Below are positions 18,039 through 60,521 of a DNA stretch of 64,000 nt, piece by piece. The position numbers and the translations under genes were made by a program. Location of the stretch: positions 246,241,971-246,305,970 of the forward strand of contig NC_085843.1 of assembly GCF_035594765.1 (NCBI RefSeq), read 5' to 3'. The DNA is from Anolis carolinensis. Lineage: Eukaryota. The notes beneath the pieces were generated by a model, which saw nothing but the letters and a program-made list of their open reading frames with translations, did not search any database and was not told the DNA's origin. Each line of letters begins with the position of its first letter. Position 1 is the first letter of the stretch.

Positions 18039-18774
18039 CTTTATTTTTATACCCCGCCCCATCTCCCCGAAGGGACTTGGGGCGGCTTACATGGGGCCCT
18101 GTTGGATAAAACAATCAAATATCAAAACACAGCAATAAAACAGTTATCCAATAAAAACATCAATTACAGTAAAAACAATAGTTAAAATCAACATAAAACA
18201 TACAATATTAACACTGGAGACTAATTCATAGAACCCAGGCAAAGTACAACATGTGCCGAAATGGGCCGAAATGGAGAAGGTAATTTCACAGTTGAAATGG
18301 ACAAAGTGCAATATAGCATTGGCAACACCTCGAGAATGGGGCTATTCTAAAATGGGCAGATAGATCAATCCGACACCAAATTAAGTATCAAAGGCCTTTT
18401 GAAAGAGCCAGGTTTTTAAGCTCCTACGGAAGGAGAGGAGGGTAGGGGCCTGCCTGATCTCTCTAGGGAGTGAGTTCCAAAGCTGGGGGGCCACAGCGGA
18501 GAAGGCCCTCTCTCTCGTCCCCACCAACCGTGACTGCGAAGGTGGTGGGAGCAAGAGAAGGGCCTCCCCTGACAAGCGAAGAGAACGTGCGGGTTCGTAG
18601 GGGGGGATGCGGTTAGGAAATGATGTTTTGGTGCTTAATTTGTAAAATCATAACATAATTTTTAATAAAATAAAATTTTAATAGGCTTTTCCTTCATCCC
18701 TCCTTATTATCCAACATTTTTGCTTATCTAACATTCTGTCGGCTCGTTTATGTTGGATAAGCAAGACTCTACTG
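17641..18774. mobile_element. Non-autonomous Tc1/mariner element interrupted by an L2 3' end
   Basis: TIRs CAGTAGATTCTCACTTATCCAAC / GTTGGATAAGCAAGACTCTACTG. Collinear with the uninterrupted relative at 39789-40115. Confidence 0.8.
17996..18617 (-). mobile_element. 5'-truncated L2 LINE with (TTA)n tail
   Basis: ORF 18381-18575 reads RAFSAVAPQLWNSLPREIRQAPTLLSFRRSLKTWLF (L2 ORF2 end). The 3' UTR is shared with 29510-29690. (AAT)n tail at about 17996-18037. Confidence 0.85.
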
Positions 18775-18915
18775 TATTTGCAAACTGCTTGCAGACAATT
18801 GCTTATTTGCAATCATGGGCTTTCCCCAACAACAGAGGTTTAACTATATAATGTTACCCCTATAACTTAAAATAGGGTAATATTACACCTTTTGTGCTGT
18901 AACTCAATGCTTCTC

Positions 18916-30764: not shown

Positions 30765-31225
30765 AGAATCATAGTTGGAAGAGATCACAGTCTAGCCCCC
30801 ACCATGCAGGAACACACAATGAAACCACCCCTGAAAGATGGCAATTCAGCCTCTGCTTGAAAATCTCCAAAGAAGAAGACTCCATCACCCTCTGAGGCAG
30901 CATATTCTAGTCCCAAACAGCTCTTACCATCAGGACGTTCTTCGAAATGTTTAGGTGGAATCTCTTTCCCTACAGCTTGAATCCATTGCTCTGTATCCTA
31001 ATCTCCAAAGCAGCAGAAAACAAGCCTGACCCCTCCTTAATATGACATTCTTTCAAGTATATAAACATGGCTATCATGTCCTCTCTCAGACATCTTTTCG
31101 CCAAATTAAACATACTCAGCTCCCTAAGCTGCCTCTCATAGGCTTGACTTTCAAATCTTTAATCATTTTAGTCACCCTTCTCTGGATACGTTCCTGCTTG
31201 TTTTGAATATCATTCTTGTCCAATC
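30765..31225 (-). mobile_element. CR1 LINE 3' fragment
   Basis: Collinear with the CR1 at 47010-47700 and with the reverse complement of 20290-20670. Confidence 0.75.
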
Positions 31226-39788: not shown

Positions 39789-40115
39789 CAGTAAAGTCTC
39801 GCTTATCCAAGCTTCGCTTATCCAACGTTCTGTATTACCCAAAGCAGTCTGCCTTTAGTAGTTAATATTTTCAATACATCGCAATATTTTGGTGCTAAAT
39901 TGGTAAATACAGTAATTACTACATAATGTTACCGTGTATTGAACTGCTTTTATGTCAATTTGTTGTAAAACATGATGTTTTGGTGCTTAATTTGTAAAAT
40001 CATAATGTAATTTGACATTTAATAGGCTTTTCCTTAATCCCTCCTTATTATTCAACATTTTTGCTTATCCAATGTTCTGTCGGCCCGTTTATGTTGGATA
40101 AGCGAGACTCTACTG
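39789..40115. mobile_element. Non-autonomous Tc1/mariner element nested in an older Tigger-like element
   Basis: TIRs CAGTAAAGTCTCGCTTATCCAA / TTGGATAAGCGAGACTCTACTG with a TA TSD. Confidence 0.85.
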
Positions 40116-40677
40116 TATGTACAAAATGAGATATCATTGAGTTCCCAAATGAGTTGGGAAACATGACATTTGCTTCATTTACACCTTATACACACAACCC
40201 AATGATAATTTTATACAATATTTATAACAATCTTGTGCATGAAACTAAGTTTGTATAAACTTTCAGAAATTTTAGGTGCCACTTTCTCAGCCACCCAATT
40301 TTAGAAAAATAGTGTTCAACTTGTAATTATCATCTTCTGTTTGGTTTCTATTGTTAACTAAAAAAAAACCTCAACTTATTGATGCCTGGTCTACAACTTT
40401 GTTATCATAAGAACATCCACAAATTTGAACAACTACCAAGAAAACATGACATAATACTATTGTAGCATGGTATAAAACAGGATAATAGAAATTTATATGT
40501 CAAAAGCATATTACTAGGTTGGACTGGTACTAAGTATAAGCTGAATCTCAGCTCTATTTGAAAATCAAACCTGTCTATCTAGAAAACTACCTTTCCTAGG
40601 ACAAACTCTGTGGGACTTATATCCAAGTACACATCTATAAGTCTGAGAATATCATCCATGGATAATATAACAACAAT

Positions 40678-42052: not shown

Positions 42053-43067
42053 GATGGTCTGAAAGGACCCTGTTGACCATTTCTGCTACCTTGGCAGCCA
42101 CCTCTCCACAAAAGTCAACATCGACACTGAAATACAACACCGCCTGAGCTCTGCGAGTGCAGCATTTTTCCAAATGAAGCAGAAAGTGTTGTCGAAGGCT
42201 TTCATGGCCGGGATTACAGGGTTGTTGTATGTCTTTCAGGCTGTGTGGCCATGTTCCAGAAATATTCTCTCCTGACGTTTCGCCATAGATGTGGGCGAAA
42301 CTTCAGGAGAGAATACTTCTGGAACATGGCCACACAGCCTGAAAGACATACAACAACCTGAAGCAGAGAGTGTTTGATGACCAGGACATCCGTAAAGATA
42401 CCAAGGTGCTTGTTTATAAAGCCATCGTCCTCCCAACCCTGCTCTATGCTATGCCTGCGAAATGTGGACGGTCTACAGACGTCACACTCAATGCGTTTCC
42501 ATCAGCGTTGCCTCAGTAAAATCCTGCAAATCTCTTGGGAAGACAGGCGGACAAATGTCAGTGTGCTGGAAGAAGCAAAGACCACCAGCATTGAAGCGAT
42601 GCTCCTATGCCATCAACTCCGCTGGACTGGACACGTTGTCCGAATGCCCAATCACCGTCTCCCAAAGCAGTTACTCTACTCCCAACTCAAGAACGGGAAA
42701 CGTAATGTTGGTGGGCAGGAAAAGGGATTTAAAAATGGACTTAAAGCCAACCTTAAAAACTGTGGCATAGACACTGAGAACTGGCAATCCCTGGCCCTTG
42801 AGCGCTCTAACTGGAGGTCAGCTGTGACCAGCAGTGTTGCGGAGTTCGAAGAGGCACGAATGGAGGGCTTAAGGGAGAAACATGCCAAGAGGAAGGAGCG
42901 TCAAGCCAACCCTGACTGGGACTGCCTCCCACCTGGAAACCGATATCCTCACTGTGGGAGAACATGCGGGTCAAGAATAGGTCTCCGTAGATGGCTATCT
43001 ACGGACACACACCCAAGACCCCACAACTGGAAGGCCATCGTCCTCGGCCTACACGGGAGCTAAAAGC
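42053..43067 (+). mobile_element. 5'-truncated RTE LINE, same family as 1-750, frameshifted
   Basis: Protein similarity to ORF 23-793; 11-bp TSD tagtcccagct at 42042-42052 and 43068-43078. Confidence 0.9.
42191..42358. mobile_element. Penelope-derived hairpin inserted in the RTE
   Basis: Near-perfect inverted repeat of about 65 bp; flanking 16-bp duplication tgaagcagaaagtgtt / tgaagcagagagtgtt. Confidence 0.8.
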
Positions 43068-43779
43068 TAGTCCCAGCTTCTGCCAACCTAGCAGTTCGAA
43101 AACATGCAAGTGTGAGTAGATCAATAGGTACCGCTCTGGCGGGAAGGTAACGGCGCTGCATGGTCACGCCTATGGCCACATGACCTTGGAGGCGTCTACG
43201 GACAACGACGGCTCTTCGGCTTAGAAATGGAGATGAGCACCAACCCCCAGAGTCAGACCCGACTAGACTTAATGCCAGGGGAAAACCTTTACCTAGAGAT
43301 TGTATCTATTATGGTGTAGTGGCTCGAGTATTGGAGACCTGGGTTTGAATTGCAGCCTCAGTCATGGAAACCCCATTGACTAATTTTGGGCAAGTCACAC
43401 TGTCTCAGCCTCAGAGGAAGGCAAAGACAAACCTGCTCTGAAAAAAACCTTGCCATGATTGGCTTGACATTAATTGGAAACTAATCAAAAGCACATAAAG
43501 CACAACCATCGAACTATTGTAAAACCCAGATCATTTCTAAACCCCAAATTGACAATAAATCTGTAAGAAACTATTTTAAAACTTTAGCACATGGTATCAC
43601 AATTACGTTCCCCCTTAAGAGTTCCAAATATCAGAGCCTGGATCTTTGCTTTAACTTTTCAAGACGGGTTTGAAACCTAGCATTGGTCTTTAACTGATCA
43701 TAACACTAGTAAAAACTCATAATACTCTGCACATGCTCAGAGGTACCCTTAGTGTTAAGTTTCTTCTCATACCAAACAT

Positions 43780-47009: not shown

Positions 47010-47700
47010 TAGAATCATAGAGATGGAAAAGATCACAAGGGTCTTCCAATCCAACCCTCATCATGTAGGAAAACACAATCAAAGCACCCCCGACAGATGG
47101 CCATCCAGCCTCTGCTTAAAAGCCTCCAGAAAAGGAGACTCAGAGATAGCATATTCCACTCCCAAACAGCTTTTACTGCCAGGAAGTTCTTCCAAATGTT
47201 TAAGTGTAACATTTTTCTATAATATGAAAGTATTGCTCCAGAGCAGCAGAAAACAAGCTTGCCCCCTCCTCAATATGACATTCTTTCAAGTATATAAACA
47301 TGGCTATCATGTCCCCGCTCAGCCTTCTTTTCTCCAAGCCAAACATACCCAGCTCCCTCAGCTCTTCCTCATGAGACTTGGCTTCCAAACCTTTGATCAT
47401 TTTGGACACATTCCAGCTTGTCAATTTTCTTTTTGAATTTTTGGTGCCCAGAACTGGACACAATATTATTCCACGTGAGGTCTGACCAAAGCAGAATAGA
47501 GTGGGACTGTGATGTTCCTCAATCTCAACACTATACTCCTATTGATGCAGCCTAGAATCACATTGTCTTTTTTATCTGCCGCATCACGTTGTTGAGTCAT
47601 GCTCAGCTTGTGGTCTATTAAGCTTCCCAGATCCGTTTCACATATACTGTTTTCATGCCAGGTGTCACCCATCCTATATCTGTGCTTATCATTTTAATTG
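47010..47700 (-). mobile_element. CR1 LINE 3' fragment
   Basis: DLGSLIDHKLSMTQQ...ILGCINRSI...VPLYSALVRPHVE and LRELGMFGLEKRRLSGDMIA; TTCTA-type tail at about 47010. Confidence 0.88.
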
Positions 47701-52049: not shown

Positions 52050-52372
52050 GGAGCCCCTCCGGTAGCGCAGTGGGTTAAACCACTCAGCTGCTGAACTTGC
52101 TGACCAGAAGGTCAGTGGTTCAAATCTGGGAAGTGGGGTGAGCTCCCGCTGTTAGCCCCAGCTTCTGCCAACCTAGCAGTTTGAAAACATGCAAATGTGA
52201 GTAGATTCAATAGGTACTGCTCCGGCGGTACGGTAATGGCGCTCCATGCAGTCATGTCTTGGAGATGTCTATGGACAATGCCGGCTCTTCAGCTTAGAAA
52301 TTGAGATGAGCACCAACCCTCAGAGTCAGACATGACTAGACTTAATGTCAGGGGAAAACCTTTACCTATACC
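52050..52372 (+). mobile_element. Sauria SINE
   Basis: tRNA-like head with A/B-box-like motifs, conserved body and acctttacctatacc tail; flanking duplication tttaactgctat / tttaactgccat. Confidence 0.88.
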
Positions 52373-53684
52373 TTTTAACTGCCATGGCTCAATGTTATGA
52401 AATCCCGAGAGTTGCAGTATTTGGCAGAGAAGGCAAAAGACCTTGTAAATTATACCCCCCCTTAATTTCACAACATTGAGCCATGGCAGTTAAAATGGTG
52501 TCAAACTAGATGCACTCTCTGAAACCCTTTAAATGTACCGTATGTTCTTTTCAAAAATGTTTTGTTTTGTTTGTGGTGGTGTGCCCTGGGATTTAATTTT
52601 TTTTAGAAAAGTCACTAAGTGAGAATAAAATATTTCTGTTGATACTGGGATTTGCCTCTGGATGTTTTGTGAAGAAAAGCAATGTCATTCATTTATTTAA
52701 AAAACAAACCCCTCAAGTTTTATAGCAACAAAAAGATTTCCTCCAATGGGAACATTTTCTTTCTCTGTTTTTCCCCTGCAGTTTCATTGTGAGCAAGGGT
52801 ATTCTATATTCTGGTTTATTTTCCTTCATGAAATGTATATTAACGTAATGAATATTAATTCAGTGATTCCAATCTCTAGATTTTTCTTTTTATATCCAGT
52901 CCCTGCCCCTGTATAACTTAAATGAATTAATTCTGTTGTTAATTACCATTCTGCACTGCTACCACTATGATTATTGGAAACTCTCTAGGGAAAATGCAAT
53001 GAAAAACATAAGGGGTCTGATGGGAATCTGCTAAAATTGGCTAATAATAACTGCAAAGGCTGTGGCTTAGCAAAGGCAATATCTATGCTGCAGAGTGGGA
53101 TAAGACTACAAATGGCAAACAAAAGACTGCCAATTATACAGTCTGTCTGGAGAATGCCAGGGCTCAGCAGCCTTGCCAGAAGTTTGGCATCTGTTTTGTG
53201 ATCATTCCCATTCAAAGTTCCTTTGAACTTCATGGAAAGTTGGGAATATAGAATTGCTGCAGTTTGTAGCTATGAATGTCTAAGATCTGTCAACGAATCA
53301 GCAAAGCTAGGCAAGGCAGTCTTTTGTGCTTCTGGCACTGTTCCTTGCCAATGAATATTTCTCGTATTGGGAAAGAATGAGCAAGACAGAAAAATATTCT
53401 GACACATTGCTTTAGGATGAAAGATCACTTGAAATATACGAAGACTCTGTAATGATATTTTTCAGTGCAGGTTGCGAAGGAGATCCAGGCGCAATTGAGC
53501 AAGCAGGTAGGATGTCCAGACAAAATATATAACAGGAGCCCTCTTCCTTTAATGGTTGTGCAAAAGGGAGGGTGTGTGTGTGTGTGACAAACAACACCTG
53601 CTGAAACTCACCTGCCAACCCTACAAGCAAATAGTAGCAATCCTATCAGGAGACTGAAATTCTTCAGGAGATCCAATATTCTTC

Positions 53685-54045
53685 TGTCATGGGACCAATT
53701 CCCAGGGCTGAATTTGCAAGCCCTGGATTTGGAGCCATAACATAAACAATCCTGAATGCCTCAGGAAAGCACCTGGCAGCAGAGCATGGGAACTCGGGGT
53801 TGAAAATCTAAACAATTATAATGAGTAGTTTGTGTGGGAATAGTAGAAATGTGAGACAGGGGGTGGGATTTGGTGATGATATTTACGTGTGGTGTTACGT
53901 TGCAACCAAGGTGATAAAATTGCTTGTATGTAAACATTATGTCATTCTCGACTTTTCCAAGTCGTGTGTTCTTCAATAAAGATCGGTTCTGATAGCAGCT
54001 GTCTTTGATCTGCGTTCATGCTGGTTGTTTGAAGTGAGCAGGACA
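53685..54045 (+). repeat. 5' LTR
   Basis: TGTCATGGG...CAGGACA; TATA-like GATAAAA at 53913-53919; Inr-like TCATTCT with its A at 53944; AATAAA at 53975-53980. Confidence 0.97.
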
Positions 54046-54048
54046 TTT

Positions 54049-54059
54049 AAGTCGAGAAT
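54049..54059 (+). promoter_or_regulatory. Self-priming primer-binding site
   Basis: AAGTCGAGAAT is the exact reverse complement of ATTCTCGACTT (53944-53954). There is no TGG tRNA-type PBS after the LTR. Confidence 0.8.
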
Positions 54060-54099
54060 CCCCATTCTCACCCTCCTGCGGAGCCGCAGTGAAGTGGAA

Positions 54100-57000
54100 A
54101 TGAGTGGAGGGGGCGATCAAAGCCCGAAAGGAGCAGAGGGGCCCTTGCCAGAGGCTCGGCCGCTGGGAGAGGAAACGCTACAAGATATCGCTTCCTCTAC
54201 CGGATACCCCAGACCGAACGGAATTACCCAGAGAATCCCCAGAGGAGGGAGATGTGTCTCAGCAGCTGCAGAGACCAGTTGGGGGTCTGGAGGGAGCATG
54301 CCGGAGACCGTGGCCCTACGGTTGTCTATCTTGGAGACCAACCTGTCCAGGCTGTCGGAGACCGTGGGAAGATTGGTGCCGCTGTTGGAGGAGAATCTCC
54401 AGAAGGAGCCCACTCGATACGGTGCCGAAAGAGAGCCGAGTAAGGACTCGGCTTGGGGCCAGAGGGGCCAGCGCGCATCGACGCAGAGCCCGGCGGCGGC
54501 AGGCGGTGACGGAGACGAGGAGTACTGGCAGGAGATGGAGTTCAGGGAAAGGATGGCGCGCGAGGAGGAGCGCCAGCGAGCCTTGGAGACTCTGAGACCG
54601 CCAACTCCAACAGTACTACCGACCCCCCGAATGGGTGTCGGGGTTGAAAGACCGCTGGGACCAGGGATCGGCTCCAGCGGGTTAATGGATGAAGGCGAGG
54701 AGGAGCCGGAGATCCCCGAAGATGGGGAGGATGCCCCGTACGGCGAAGGAGTGCGAAGTGCGGGGGCTACAGCAGGACCTGCATTCAAATGGGTGGAAGG
54801 GCCGACAGCAGCGGCGGAATCCCGAGGGCCGCGGGGAACGACCGCTGGGCTGGGACGCGGAGTGATCAAAGGGCCAGCTCAGGGGAACCTGATGCAACCC
54901 CTCCCCAGACTACCCATGCAAAGGCAGAGGGCTGCAGAATGGATGCCTAGGAGAGAGGAGCTCAAACTAGAATTCGGAGGGGAATCTTCCGAACTGAACT
55001 TTTTCCTCATTGGCATCAGAGGATACATGGAGGACAATGCACACACATTCCCCTCCGAAGGAAGCATGGTGCGGGCCATTGGTAATACTCTGAGGAGGGG
55101 AGCGGCCAGCTGGTATGTGCAACTACATGCCAGACGCGACCCGTGCTTGAGGTCAGTGCCCCAATTCCTCGCAGCACTGGAAAACCGATTTAGAGACCCG
55201 CTGGAGCAATTGAGGGCTCGAGACCAACTAAAAGGAATAAAGCAGAGGGATAAGACGGTACCCGAGTACGCAGAAGAATTCCTCCATCTCGCGGAAAGGG
55301 TACCAGAGTGGTCCGAAGTGACCAAAGTGGAAATATTCAAAGAGGGACTGCGCCCCGAGGTATTTAGTTGGGCGGCACACAGAGATGACCCAGAGACACT
55401 ATGGGGTTGGATTCAACTGGCAGGGCGCGTCGAATCCACCCTGTCCCAAGTAAAGCGCTTCCGGAGCGGCGGCGGCGGCGGCCAGCAGAGACCGGTGGCG
55501 AGGGGTCGGGGAGAAACGAGGAAGCAGGAGAAACCCGGAGGGAGGCCGGGAATCCCCTTCAAAGGAGACGACAACAGACCTAAACCGGGATGCTTTATAT
55601 GTGGGAAGACGGGCCATCGGGCGGCAGAATGTTGGGCCCGAAAGGGAGAACCGCCCAAAGCCTCAAAGCCCACGCCAGCAGCCGGGAGACGAGCGGAGGA
55701 GGAGGTGCGAGAATCTCCGGAGAGGCTGGTGAGTCAAGACAAACGCATGCTGGTGGTGCCGATCTGCTTGTCGGGGTTAGAGAATCGGGCTACCTGTAGA
55801 GCGTTCGTGGATTGTGGTTGCTCTAGGAACATTATAACTCCGGAATTAGCAGGGGCACTAAAGTACCAGCAGACGCTGCTTGACTCCCCAATTGCATTTT
55901 CGCAGCTAGATGGATCAGTTGCTGCTGGGGAAGTATCTACGAAAGAAATACAGGGGATCCCATGCAAAATTGGCAAATGGGAAGGAAGAATATCCTTTGT
56001 GATAGCCCCTATTGCCACATACAATATCATACTAGGGATTCCATGGCTTGAACAGGCAAACCCCGCAGTGGATTGGAGAGGAAAGAGCCTGGCATTTAAA
56101 GAGCAACAAACACAATGGGAGATAAGCAAAATAGCAGAGGAGGAGAGCGAGGAAGATGAAGGGGGGGAAATAGACCAAAAACTATTGCCCCCTGAATACA
56201 GGGACTTTGTGGATGTGTTCAATCAGAAAGAGGCAAGTAAATTACCTCCCAAAAGGAATATAGAAGTAGAAATCGAAATAACCCCAGGAGCAAACTTACC
56301 AAAACCAAAAGTGTATCCCATGTCTGTCCAGGAGAAGGAGGAATTGAGGAAATACATTGATAAGAATCTGGCGCGAGGCTTCATTAAGCCGTCCAGCTCC
56401 CCTTTGGGAGCCCCAGTGTTATTTAGGAGAAAGAAAGACAACTCTTTAAGACTGTGCATTGACTATCGAAATTTAAATGCAATTACTAAGGATAATAAAT
56501 ACCCTATGCCCTTAGTAAAGGATCTGATTACCGTGTTAAAGAAAGGAAGCATATTTACCAAACTTGATTTAATTGAAGCTTATCATAAATTAAGAATCAA
56601 ACCCGAGGATACTTGGAAAACTGCATTTTCCTGCGCATTCGGCCATTTTGAATATAAAATTTTGCCTTTTGGATTAAAAAATGGAGGCGCTTGTTTTATG
56701 CAGCTTATAAACGAAATCTTACATCCACTATTATATCGAGGAGTATTCATATTTTTGGATGATATCCTTATCGTAAGCGAGGACAAAGAGCAACACATTG
56801 AACTAGTCCGGGAAGTTTTGCAAAAACTGAGGGAAGCAAAACTGTATGCGAAACTCTCCAAATGTGAATTTAATAAAACGCAAATTGACTTTTTGGGGTA
56901 TCGAATATCTCCGGAGGGGTTAGCTATGGACCCATCCAAAGTGTCGGACGTAAGGGAATGGGGAGTGCCTCAAACCAGGAGACAATTGCAATCGTTCCTA

Positions 57001-58920
57001 GGATTTGCAAATTTTTATAGATCATTCATAAAAGGCTTTGCACAGATAACCGCACCCCTCACAGAACTTTTAAAAACAAAGGGGAAAGGGGAGACAGCGA
57101 AAGTGAAAGCCCCTGGCGCCAAGTTGAGCTGGACGCCAGAATGCCAAAAGGCTTTTGAAACCCTAAAAGAACGCTTTACAGGAGAACCTGTCCTAAAGCA
57201 CCCCGACATTCAAAGCCCTTTCATAATACATTGTGATGCTTCGGATTGTGCATACGGAGCAGTACTATTGCAAAAAGATCAAAATGGGAACTTAAAGCCT
57301 TGCGGATATTTATCTCGGAAATTCAGTGAAACTGAAAAATGTTGGCCCATATGGGAAAAGGAAGCATTAGCTATATTAAAAGCCTTGGAATGCTGGCGAC
57401 ACTTCCTCGAAGGGAGTGGAATCCCATTTGAAATTTGGTCTGATCATAAGAACCTCCAGTACTTACAGTCTCCTCGAAAATTATCCCCCAAACAAATTAG
57501 ATGGGCACAATATTTTAGCAGGTTCGATTTCCAATTAAAGTTTTTCCAAGGGAAACAGAATGTTTTGGCAGATGCTCTTTCACGCATGCCTCAGCACGAG
57601 GACATAACCACAGCAAAAGAGGGAACGTTATTTTCTGAAAGGCAATGGGGTTTAGCTGTCAGTACAAGAGCGCAGGCTCAAAGGGAGAGCATTGCTACTG
57701 TCAAATTTGAAGGAGAAGATAGTTGGGAAAAGGAACTGAGGCAGTCATATGAAGGAGATCAGTGGATCTTATCCAACGCGGGAAAAGGGGAGCAGAAGGG
57801 AGGATTTTGGTTTGTGAACAAGAAACTGTATATCCCAGCGATATTGAGGATTAAGATTTTGCATCGTTTTCATAATAACCAGAGCGCTGGTCATATGGGG
57901 ATTACAAAAACGACGAAGGCGATAGCAAAACACTGTTGGTGGCCAGGGATGAGAAAGGACATAAAAACTTATGTTATCCAATGCGATGATTGTGCCAAAA
58001 ATAAACTGAGAGGAGGGAAACCAATGGGACTATTACAAACGGTAGCAGAACCTACCAGGCCTTGGGAATGTGTAGCCATGGACTTCGTGGGAGAACTGCC
58101 TGTTAGCAGGGGGCATCGCTACATATGGACAGTATTAGACCTGTTCTCTAAGCAGGCCCACTTTATAGCACTGGCTAAACTACCATCGGCAGAGAAACTG
58201 GCTGAATTATACATAAACCACATTTACAAACTTCATGGATGTCCCAGTAGAGTGGTCAGTGATAGGGGTGTTCAATTTACAGCAAAATTCTGGGAAAAAT
58301 TCTTGGAAATGCTAGGAGCAGAAAGGAGCCTAAGTTCTGCTTTTCACCCCATGACAAACGGGGCGGTAGAACGTACTCAACAGACGCTGGGGCAGTTCCT
58401 TCGCATGTACTCTAATCTGAGACAAAATGATTGGTCTAAGTGGCTAGCCTTTGCTGAACTAGCTTTTAACTCTACCATACATTCCGCAACAAATAAAACC
58501 CCCTTTGAAGTAGTTTACGGGTATGAAATCCAGCCTCTGCCCCAATTGCCAAGGTGGGCAGAGGATGAAGAAACAGGGGCAGGGAAATGGAAAACCCAAA
58601 TGCTCGAATGTTGGAGTAAGGTGACTGCATCCTTGAAAGAAGCACACAAAAAGTATAAAACATTCGCAGACAGGAAAAGGGTGGAAGGCGATAAACTGGA
58701 GAAAGGGGACTTAGTGTGGTTAAGCACACAAAACATCAAATTGGGGCTACCTTCAAGGAAACTAGGCCCCAAATTTATTGGACCTTTCAGGATACAGGAT
58801 GTGATAAACGAAGTGACTTTCCAATTGTCCTTGCCAAAAAGTTTGGGGAAAATACATCCAGTATTCCATCGCAGTTTATTGAAAAAGTATATGGGTACTT
58901 TGGACAAAATGGATACCTAG
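54100..58920 (+). CDS. Gag-Pol polyprotein (1606 aa from the first ATG): capsid, CCHC knuckle, aspartic protease, RT, RNase H, integrase
   Basis: Gag: AASWY...LKGIKQ...EYAEEF...FKEGL and CFICGKTGHRAAEC. Protease: AFVDCGCS. RT: LRLCIDYRNLN, KLDL, LPFGL, FLDD. RNase H: CDAS, EKEALAI, SDHKNL, ADALSR. Integrase: HHCC, MDF/SDRG/VER and the GPF module. Domain order is that of Ty3/Gypsy. Confidence 0.97.
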   Translation: MSGGGDQSPKGAEGPLPEARPLGEETLQDIASSTGYPRPNGITQRIPRGGRCVSAAAETSWGSGGSMPETVALRLSILETNLSRLSETVGRLVPLLEENLQKEPTRYGAEREPSKDSAWGQRGQRASTQSPAAAGGDGDEEYWQEMEFRERMAREEERQRALETLRPPTPTVLPTPRMGVGVERPLGPGIGSSGLMDEGEEEPEIPEDGEDAPYGEGVRSAGATAGPAFKWVEGPTAAAESRGPRGTTAGLGRGVIKGPAQGNLMQPLPRLPMQRQRAAEWMPRREELKLEFGGESSELNFFLIGIRGYMEDNAHTFPSEGSMVRAIGNTLRRGAASWYVQLHARRDPCLRSVPQFLAALENRFRDPLEQLRARDQLKGIKQRDKTVPEYAEEFLHLAERVPEWSEVTKVEIFKEGLRPEVFSWAAHRDDPETLWGWIQLAGRVESTLSQVKRFRSGGGGGQQRPVARGRGETRKQEKPGGRPGIPFKGDDNRPKPGCFICGKTGHRAAECWARKGEPPKASKPTPAAGRRAEEEVRESPERLVSQDKRMLVVPICLSGLENRATCRAFVDCGCSRNIITPELAGALKYQQTLLDSPIAFSQLDGSVAAGEVSTKEIQGIPCKIGKWEGRISFVIAPIATYNIILGIPWLEQANPAVDWRGKSLAFKEQQTQWEISKIAEEESEEDEGGEIDQKLLPPEYRDFVDVFNQKEASKLPPKRNIEVEIEITPGANLPKPKVYPMSVQEKEELRKYIDKNLARGFIKPSSSPLGAPVLFRRKKDNSLRLCIDYRNLNAITKDNKYPMPLVKDLITVLKKGSIFTKLDLIEAYHKLRIKPEDTWKTAFSCAFGHFEYKILPFGLKNGGACFMQLINEILHPLLYRGVFIFLDDILIVSEDKEQHIELVREVLQKLREAKLYAKLSKCEFNKTQIDFLGYRISPEGLAMDPSKVSDVREWGVPQTRRQLQSFLGFANFYRSFIKGFAQITAPLTELLKTKGKGETAKVKAPGAKLSWTPECQKAFETLKERFTGEPVLKHPDIQSPFIIHCDASDCAYGAVLLQKDQNGNLKPCGYLSRKFSETEKCWPIWEKEALAILKALECWRHFLEGSGIPFEIWSDHKNLQYLQSPRKLSPKQIRWAQYFSRFDFQLKFFQGKQNVLADALSRMPQHEDITTAKEGTLFSERQWGLAVSTRAQAQRESIATVKFEGEDSWEKELRQSYEGDQWILSNAGKGEQKGGFWFVNKKLYIPAILRIKILHRFHNNQSAGHMGITKTTKAIAKHCWWPGMRKDIKTYVIQCDDCAKNKLRGGKPMGLLQTVAEPTRPWECVAMDFVGELPVSRGHRYIWTVLDLFSKQAHFIALAKLPSAEKLAELYINHIYKLHGCPSRVVSDRGVQFTAKFWEKFLEMLGAERSLSSAFHPMTNGAVERTQQTLGQFLRMYSNLRQNDWSKWLAFAELAFNSTIHSATNKTPFEVVYGYEIQPLPQLPRWAEDEETGAGKWKTQMLECWSKVTASLKEAHKKYKTFADRKRVEGDKLEKGDLVWLSTQNIKLGLPSRKLGPKFIGPFRIQDVINEVTFQLSLPKSLGKIHPVFHRSLLKKYMGTLDKMDT

Positions 58921-58965
58921 TGTTCTTGTTTGATTTATTTCAGAGTCGTGATAGAAGAAGCACGG

Positions 58966-58990
58966 AAGAGGAGGACGAAGAAAAGGGGGG
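58966..58990 (+). promoter_or_regulatory. Polypurine tract
   Basis: gaagaggaggacgaagaaaagggggg-type purine run ending 5 nt before the 3' LTR. Confidence 0.85.
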
Positions 58991-58995
58991 CGCCA

Positions 58996-59356
58996 TGTCA
59001 TGGGACCAATTCCCAGGGCTGAATTTGCAAGCCCTGGATTTGGAGCCATAACATAAACAATCCTGAATGCCTCAGGAAAGCACCTGGCAGCAGAGCATGG
59101 GAACTCGGGGTTGAAAATCTAAACAATTATAATGAGTAGTTTGTGTGGGAATAGTAGAAATGTGAGACAGGGGGTGGGATTTGGTGATGATATTTACGTG
59201 TGGTGTTACGTTGCAACCAAGGTGATAAAATTGCTTGTATGTAAACATTATGTCATTCTCGACTTTTCCAAGTCGTGTGTTCTTCAATAAAGATCGGTTC
59301 TGATAGCAGCTGTCTTTGATCTGCGTTCATGCTGGTTGTTTGAAGTGAGCAGGACA
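58996..59356 (+). repeat. 3' LTR
   Basis: 361 bp; no differences from the 5' LTR seen by eye, and the internal 71-aa antisense ORFs translate identically. Confidence 0.97.
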
Positions 59357-60521
59357 TTCTTCCAAAACTACTTTCCTCCAAATATATCAAAAAAAATGCT
59401 TTCAGAACTGCACACACTTTCACACTCTTTTTCTGGCAAACATTGCAGGTTCAACAGAGGTCAAATCAGCAGTATGAGCTACAAATACATGTTATGCACT
59501 GTTGTACATAAATGTTATCTTCCTATAAGTTGGTCTTAAGGTTTTGTTGGTATTCTTTAAATCTACATACAGTAGATATTATTGTTATGCATCCACGTTT
59601 CAAAATAATTCTATTTTAATATGACAATGACAAAACACCTTTGCAAAATTGACATTGTTCAAGACAGGGCATTTAAAACATTTCTACTTGGGACCCCTTT
59701 CCACTCAGGAAATATTTATGTGACCCCTGGATGTATAGGTATATAAAATTAGTATAAACATCAAAGATTTACTGATAACAAAACAGCATTTACAATGCTT
59801 GCTAAGCAGGCTGATTTTTCTTTTTGTGAAGTATAGTCAAAACATCTTCTGCAGAGTCCACTGTACAATTGATGTGTAGTAAATGTCTAAAAGCAGCCAC
59901 TAGGTGACAATCAGGTTTTTCTACTGTTGCCAAATTTTTGAGACCCAATATTGAACTAAGGTGGGCCCATTTGGGCTCTGGATCACAGTTTAAGAAGCAG
60001 CGGTCTAGGATATCCTTTTTTAATTTGGGCTTTATCCTATGCAGCTGCAACACATTGATACACTTTAGCTATCAATGTTCTCCTGGCATTTGTAATTGGA
60101 TGATATACTTGGAATTCTTTTCATGCATACAGTCACTGGAACTTCCTTGTGGAGAATTCTAAAGCACCCTCACCAAATTACAAATCCAGGACTCCACAGA
60201 ACAGATTGATGACAACTAGAGTAGAATCATACTGCTATAATTGTTCACTGTAGATACTCACTTAATACCCTTCTACACTGCCCTATGTCCCAAGATCTCA
60301 TCCCAGATTATCTGGCAGTGGAGACTCATATAATCCAGTTCAAAGCAGATAACCTGGGATCAGATCCTGGGATATAAGGATGGTGTAGAAGGGGCTTTAG
60401 TGACCTCTAGCTCAGTTCGATTACAATGAGCACTGTCCACAGCCAACATGGGGGAAAGCTTGTCATATACAACCTCATCAGATGGGGCGAATTTAGCATC
60501 CTAGGATGCTTTCACCCCATC

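Follow-up and report, generated by a model that had tools for sequence, protein, structure and literature searches.

How retrotransposons whose gag and pol genes are fused in one reading frame produce capsid in excess over enzyme is a fundamental problem of retroelement biology, and it is raised directly by a locus of Anolis carolinensis. We analysed a stretch of 64,000 nucleotides (nt; NCBI RefSeq assembly GCF_035594765.1, contig NC_085843.1, positions 246,241,971 to 246,305,970 of the forward strand), hereafter the window, in whose own numbering coordinates are given unless a locus is named. It contains a very young, apparently intact Ty3/Gypsy retrotransposon that has long terminal repeats (LTRs) and gag and pol fused in one frame. 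Our analysis suggests that, in a squamate clade of Gypsy elements to which this copy belongs, a splice spanning pol probably yields a Gag-only mRNA that would supply the excess of Gag.

A predicted intron spanning pol

The element has a single open reading frame (ORF), with neither a stop nor a frameshift between gag and pol, and the same is true of four related elements (L001, L002, L014 and L015). Its features, all on the forward (+) strand, are as follows.

53685..54047, + strand: 5' LTR, 363 nt, starting TGTCA, with AATAAA at 53975-53980
54100..58920, + strand: single gag-pol ORF, ATG at 54100 to TAG at 58918-58920, 1606 codons
54100..55728, + strand: first exon (exon 1) of the putative Gag mRNA, with 543 codons for capsid and CCHC knuckle
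55591..55632, + strand: CCHC zinc knuckle, CFICGKTGHRAAEC
55726..55734, + strand: predicted 5' splice site CTG/GTGAGT, phase 0, read as Leu-Val-Ser when unspliced
55729..58943, + strand: predicted intron, 3215 nt, with protease, reverse transcriptase, RNase H, integrase, the pol stop and a 23-nt spacer
55807..55824, + strand: protease active-site motif VDCGCS, inside the predicted intron
58918..58920, + strand: pol stop, TAG
58921..58943, + strand: predicted 3' splice site, a polypyrimidine tract then CAG, occupying the entire spacer from the pol stop to the purine-rich region
58944..59051, + strand: coding part of exon 2, 35 codons plus TAA, consisting of the purine-rich region with the polypurine tract (PPT; 58944-58995) and 53 nt of U3
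58977..58995, + strand: PPT, GAAGAAAAGGGGGG plus GCGCCA, directly 5' of the 3' LTR
58996..59358, + strand: 3' LTR, 363 nt, with AATAAA at 59286-59291

The putative donor (gagaggCTG/GTGAGTcaa, GT at 55729-55730) lies 32 codons past the CCHC knuckle and 26 codons ahead of the protease motif, while the putative acceptor (tgttcttgtttgatttatttCAG/, AG at 58942-58943) lies 23 nt 3' of the pol stop with no intervening AG. Because the protease motif is inside the intron, the predicted spliced product would be devoid of protease. Exon 2 translates as SRDRRSTEEEDEEKGGAMSWDQFPGLNLQALDLEP and then meets a stop at 59049-59051; as the LTR starts at 58996, the last 18 codons of this exon and the stop lie in U3, and the predicted spliced Gag comes to 578 amino acids (543 + 35). 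A first-pass annotation of the window, made from the sequence alone, had proposed this architecture, and its structural part holds throughout: the 1606 open codons, the phase-0 donor between knuckle and protease, the acceptor just past the pol stop, the intron length, the 35-residue tail, the stop in U3 and the length of the protein are all as it described them.

By a simple consensus count, the whole 5.7-kb element has two donors with 8/9 consensus matches and three acceptors with at least 13/17 pyrimidines followed by YAG, and the GTGAGT at 55729 is the only GTRAGT in the entire ORF. A back-of-envelope extrapolation from these counts puts the chance of both signals falling in two short gaps at about 1 in 1000. 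One copy alone would nevertheless not prove function, and it is the comparative evidence that does the real work. We also observed a second fair acceptor, atgctctttcacgcatgcctCAG/, at 57572-57594 in the integrase region; a splice from the 55729 donor to 57594 would be in frame (1866 nt) and would fuse Gag to the C-terminal part of integrase, which may be a matter of chance.

Public gene models that use the intron

Exon 1 and exon 2 were searched separately against public proteins, exon 1 alone serving as the query for the matches described here. It retrieved 20 near-full-length A. carolinensis RefSeq models of 566-578 amino acids, 80-83% identical to the window Gag, whose precomputed Pfam domains are those of Gag only. 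Their C-termini (...ESSEKL/NYDERRTEEEDEENEGAMSWSQIPGLNFQALNLTS and variants) are the homologue of the predicted junction and tail of the window copy. Shorter A. carolinensis models have the same tail, and cluster sizes total about 160 sequences.

We mapped the loci behind 13 models (12 Anolis, 1 corn snake) and used a script that tested which GT..AG split reproduces the public protein. In all 13, the protein was reproduced only by the removal of a GT..AG intron containing all of pol. The intron-internal pol is an intact ORF in six of the seven copies of L001/L004-L009 and in 5/5 of L002/L010-L013. Donor, acceptor and intron length by locus are as follows.

L001, L004-L009 (Anolis, 81-83% Gag identity): CTG or TTG/GTGAGT; ...TTTGTTTCAG/; 3214-3215 nt
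L002, L010-L013 (Anolis, 44% Gag identity): TTG/GTAAGT; ...CCTTCCAG/; 3228 nt
L003 (A. sagrei): TTG/GTGAGT; ...CCCTTTCAG/; 3191 nt
L017 (Pantherophis guttatus, corn snake): ATG/GTGAGT; ...GGGATAG/; 3524 nt

Snake models ending at a ...DPM/ donor come from Crotalus tigris, Ahaetulla prasina and Pantherophis in RefSeq and, in the submitter's own annotation, from C. adamanteus, and altogether annotations of different pipelines agree on the donor in five species. These models presumably rest on RNA-seq introns. The donor has even been annotated into a host gene: in C. tigris, MCAT isoforms X1 and X2 (P0373 and P0372) begin with Gag up to the ...DPM/ donor, which in isoform X2 is joined to host MCAT exons.

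Several other models touch on this family. The A. carolinensis entry 'Replication protein A 32 kDa subunit isoform X2' (P0044) is a 565-residue Gag-plus-tail protein. Another, P0002 (UniProt R4GAB6_ANOCA, an Ensembl model of 713 amino acids), is 90% identical to the window Gag and continues across protease as far as ...KITEEE, where the sequence switches to VGERGGAMSWGQFPELSLQ of the PPT and LTR; it represents either an internally deleted gag-protease element, in which the deletion extends from the acidic run behind protease to the purine tract, or another splice. Two candidates were rejected as examples of the intron: the gecko model P0221 (L018), in which gag ends at a natural stop and the intron is an unrelated 5' one, and P0215 (L016), considered as a spliced cDNA, whose gag is likewise closed by a natural stop, with pol in an overlapping frame.

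Conservation and origin of the splice signals

The same signals stand in the same places in two unannotated snake-type elements, L014 of Crotalus adamanteus and the Logan contig L015. Across the squamate lineages compared, the donor reads NTG/GTRAGT in phase 0 in 8/8, and the acceptor consists throughout of a pyrimidine tract with a YAG abutting the purine tract or the LTR. The residue ahead of the junction is Leu, Met or Val, yet its codon always ends in TG, and in all eight lineages the junction Val is GTR and the Ser is AGT. Judged by codon usage in five of these ORFs, GTR-AGT would occur at a Val-Ser with a probability of 0.065-0.15. Conserved residues with four- or sixfold degenerate codons share their codon only 20-30% of the time between deep lineages, so that synonymous sites are saturated. 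The donor is thereby under constraint at the level of nucleotides and not only of protein.

Two further measures were set aside. GTRAGT occurs once per Anolis ORF where about 2.3 are expected by our own arithmetic, a depletion that is not significant, and the spacer is identical at 19/23 positions between two Anolis families, which does not clearly exceed the identity of roughly 71% found at pol third codon positions.

Fish relatives L019 and L020, with 38-40% polyprotein identity, have no comparable donor and no Val-Ser at the aligned site. After the pol stop of L019 there is no pyrimidine-rich YAG acceptor, and the pol stop of L020 directly abuts the PPT. A perfect 17/17 pyrimidine tract with CAG is found in U3 of L020, just past the LTR start (L020:6431-6453, Corythoichthys intestinalis). 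In a quick maximum-likelihood tree of the pol region (IQ-TREE), the intron-bearing elements form one squamate clade (SH-aLRT 100) apart from the fish and amphibian elements, with L015 grouping with a snake sequence. Because all intron-bearing elements fall in this one clade, the predicted intron is a derived and conserved trait of a squamate Gypsy clade, and the arrangement appears to be ancestral to the anole and snake members of the clade.

A tail without coding selection

The first-pass annotation had gone further and had treated the C-terminal tail encoded by PPT and U3 as a selected coding feature, one that would also explain the selected U3 frames in the solo LTRs. We found no sign of this. 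Tail length by lineage is 35, 23, 13, 5, 5 or 4 codons, and the 21 tail substitutions between the window copy and L001 are split 8/6/7 over the codon positions; the same comparison gives 43/55/179 for gag and 62/40/310 for pol, the expected third-position excess. That the PPT frame is open proves nothing, because a tract made only of purines cannot contain a stop in any frame. The tail peptide is, then, not under coding selection but incidental, closing at the first stop in U3, and an unselected tail gives no grounds for predicting that U3 frames of solo LTRs should be selected. Those solo LTRs moreover do not belong to this family, since blastn within the 64 kb matched only the element itself and its own two LTRs, and no other copy.

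What survives of that annotation is thus its core, a pol-spanning intron for a Gag mRNA in a vertebrate Gypsy lineage, which the public models and the conserved signals bear out, while the claims added to it do not find support. Conservation in related elements, which it had named as a check, is likewise split: donor and acceptor are kept in the eight squamate lineages, and the tail, at 4-35 codons, is not.

Proposed mechanism and points against it

Given signals that are conserved, confined to one clade and used by public models, we infer that splicing would take place in vivo and that its product would supply Gag; the support for splicing itself comes from annotation and conservation. The full-length RNA would serve both as genome and as Gag-Pol mRNA. 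A fraction of it would be spliced by the host spliceosome from the donor at 55729 to the acceptor at 58943, immediately 5' of the PPT, removing protease, reverse transcriptase, RNase H and integrase. What the spliced RNA would retain is the 5' leader and gag, followed by the PPT and by a 3' LTR whose poly(A) signal, the ordinary AATAAA at 59286-59291, would serve spliced and unspliced RNA alike; the stop codon of the spliced RNA would lie in the last exon. Translation would give capsid-nucleocapsid without protease and with a short incidental tail. The outcome would be an excess of capsid over enzymes, which is elsewhere obtained by frameshifting, stop-codon readthrough or protein degradation. 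Unspliced RNA would have to escape splicing in part and be exported, as in retroviruses and Cer1.

Several observations weigh against this proposal. The eight lineages are related, and their agreement does not amount to eight independent trials. Gene predictors are themselves drawn to strong splice signals. In retroviruses, the T-rich stretch ahead of a PPT is known to act in plus-strand priming. Among the search matches there was no Gag protein derived from transcripts (Logan) that had a spliced tail. Neither the window (by blastn) nor the 13 fetched loci carrying the models yielded a copy from which exactly the intron is missing, so the first-pass suggestion that the spliced RNA might itself be retrotransposed as gag-only copies gains nothing from these sequences. 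Finally, the Logan element L016 (SRR28863755), in which gag ends at its own stop and pol lies in an overlapping frame, keeps GTG/GTGAGT at the homologous place ahead of protease (L016:1440-1600, on a contig without the element's 3' end), and because of this the donor motif is not strictly tied to a fused ORF.

Alternative explanations

The alternative that fares best, though we regard it as rather unlikely, is that splicing is real and serves a purpose other than the ratio of Gag to Pol. Translation could draw on the spliced RNA and packaging on the unspliced RNA, a division proposed for BARE; Gag-plus-tail could be a regulator or inhibitor, like CERV of Cer1 or a dominant-negative Gag; or splicing could be a side reaction, neutral or imposed by the host, that leaves less genomic RNA. 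There are precedents, since the spliced 2.4 kb mRNA of Cer1 encodes a new protein and not Gag (PMC3315495), and BARE reportedly relies on distinct RNA pools (PMC3735527). The donor kept by L016 in spite of its own gag stop, and the in-frame alternative acceptor within pol at 57594, also speak for such a purpose. Against it, the predicted product is a complete capsid-nucleocapsid with only a short unselected tail, and hence Gag itself, not a new protein. Were the splice neutral or imposed by the host, its donor and acceptor would not have been preserved between lineages with saturated synonymous sites, and a fused ORF with no other evident route to excess Gag is the very setting in which copia and EVADE use splicing.

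Less likely still is that no meaningful splicing occurs, Val-Ser being kept for the nucleocapsid-protease boundary, the T-rich spacer for priming, and the models being prediction artefacts. Every member of the clade does conserve Val-Ser at this position, retroviruses are known to have T-rich boxes 5' of the PPT, and there was no Logan-derived spliced Gag among the matches and no processed copy in the window and fetched loci. Full-length 1606-residue products, too, are found only in UniRef and not in RefSeq, although this could reflect the filtering of pol-containing models. Yet protein constraint leaves unexplained why the Ser is always AGT, one of six codons, and why TG invariably closes the codon ahead of the junction although the amino acid there differs; a priming box needs no YAG exactly at its 3' end, where one stands in all eight lineages, and L020, the one fish relative with a readable PPT, has no such box ahead of it; different pipelines agree on the donor in five species, and a predictor would have no cause to split an intact ORF of 1606 codons unless there were evidence for an intron. 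Supply of Gag by a pol-spanning splice therefore remains the reading that we favour.

Comparison with known systems

Gag supply by splicing has previously been shown for Ty1/copia elements of flies and plants, and we rate the squamate Gypsy case as a variant of this copia/EVADE strategy: it has one gag-pol frame without a recoding signal, a conserved donor and acceptor, and a predicted spliced ORF that ends soon after gag. Drosophila copia has one gag-pol frame, an intron of about 3 kb and an abundant 2-kb subgenomic RNA for capsid (Yoshioka et al. 1990, as cited in PMC5580714). The Anolis element shares the single frame and, by prediction, the long intron removing pol sequence, whereas copia belongs to the Ty1/copia superfamily, with integrase before reverse transcriptase, and to a host of another phylum. 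The spliced copia product retains protease, which in the Anolis element lies inside the intron. The Anolis acceptor also differs in its far 3' position, hard against the PPT, as a result of which the stop of the predicted spliced ORF falls in the LTR.

EVADE of Arabidopsis and further plant Ty1/copia elements produce a spliced shGAG mRNA from a fused ORF, with donor and acceptor positions conserved across families, and no conserved splicing was seen in Arabidopsis Ty3/Gypsy elements (PMC5580714). The same splicing is seen in the Tork and Retrofit copia lineages of cereals (PMC7765848), and Gag supply by splicing is documented for barley BARE (PMC3735527). As in EVADE, a dedicated Gag mRNA would be spliced from a fused ORF. 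Unlike it, the Anolis element is predicted to lose the whole of pol and to use the normal LTR poly(A) signal, whereas the EVADE intron is centred on protease and its removal is linked to early termination, with polyadenylation within the element.

Closer in classification is the C. elegans Ty3/Gypsy element Cer1, which has GAG and POL in a single frame and whose spliced 2.4 kb mRNA encodes CERV, a protein sharing only N-terminal parts of GAG; its consensus splice sites are skipped for genomic RNA and are conserved in related species (PMC3315495). Our element resembles Cer1 as an animal Ty3/Gypsy element with a single frame and conserved splice sites, and differs in that the Cer1 splice makes a novel protein rather than supplying Gag. 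Tf1 of S. pombe and the vertebrate sushi-ichi/PEG10 elements belong to the same broad Ty3/Gypsy group as the Anolis element, whose integrase has a Tf2-1-type SH3 domain; Tf1 also has a single gag-pol frame. Excess Gag comes from the degradation of Pol products in Tf1 and from -1 frameshifting in PEG10, and splicing plays no part in either. In simple retroviruses (env mRNA) and foamy viruses (pol mRNA), balanced incomplete splicing sets product ratios and unspliced RNA is exported, much as we propose here; the retroviral donor, however, lies in the leader, so that gag is inside the intron and is removed, whereas in the Anolis element gag would be the retained exon and pol the intron.

A survey of vertebrate Metaviridae capsid genes that includes the anole makes no mention of such an intron (PMC11011659). 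As the first-pass annotation had supposed for this lineage, full-text searches, in a collection with few subscription journals, gave no published description for vertebrate or Ty3/Gypsy elements, so that an earlier one may exist.

Identity of the element and other features of the window

The two 363-nt LTRs are 100% identical, with identity continuing through 54047 (blastn of the element against the window and direct alignment), and a target-site duplication TTCTTC is possible if the LTR end is taken as ...GGACA (54045). The paired LTRs, the PPT adjoining the 3' LTR and the order gag, protease, reverse transcriptase, RNase H and integrase are those of Ty3/Gypsy elements (Metaviridae). The order of Pfam domains in the polyprotein is Ty3_capsid/Retrotrans_gag, zf-CCHC, gag-asp_proteas, RVT_1, RT_RNaseH, Integrase_H2C2, rve and SH3_Tf2-1. 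No chromodomain (PF00385) was matched in the window polyprotein, whose C-terminal domain in Pfam is SH3. PF00385 is present in snake and fish relatives, with which the Anolis elements group in the tree; the element is chromovirus-related by descent but, as its polyprotein has no PF00385, is not a chromovirus by the chromodomain criterion. The nearest proteins are from Anolis carolinensis, at 99% identity, and the composition of the window is vertebrate-like (40% G+C, CpG observed/expected 0.32).

In the window copy, L001-L003 and L016 the protease triplet is Asp-Cys-Gly (VDCGCS), and in snake and fish relatives it is the usual Asp-Thr/Ser-Gly. The leader behind the 5' LTR (TTTAAGTCGAGAATCCCC..., window 54046-54100) has no obvious tRNA-type primer binding site. 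Four further pairs of dispersed repeats in the window, 85-92% identical, are unrelated to the element.

160-459 and 42493-42792: unrelated repeat pair
31003-31139 and 47236-47372: unrelated repeat pair
43185-43314 and 52258-52387: unrelated repeat pair
18677-18787 and 40018-40128: unrelated repeat pair

Implications

An immediate consequence concerns annotation. If the proposal is true, roughly 160 entries named 'uncharacterized protein LOC...' or 'PEG10' in anole and snake RefSeq would be transposon Gag mRNAs and not host genes, and at least one host gene model, MCAT isoform X2 of Crotalus tigris, is a chimera made via this donor. The proposal also raises the questions of how unspliced RNA escapes splicing and gets exported, and whether a gag-only mRNA eases the birth of domesticated capsid genes. 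A bolder combined claim would be that the squamate Gypsy clade independently evolved balanced splicing in the style of retroviruses, and that its capped and polyadenylated Gag-only mRNA, with leader, primer binding site region, PPT and LTR, is a natural intermediate giving birth to gag-only non-autonomous elements and to domesticated capsid genes of the PEG10/RTL/PNMA kind; taken as a whole, we consider this speculative and improbable. The elements themselves look active today, with identical LTRs, intact ORFs and many identical copies, and their pol-spanning splice, if confirmed, would be a convergent solution to the supply of Gag in the superfamily closest to retroviruses.

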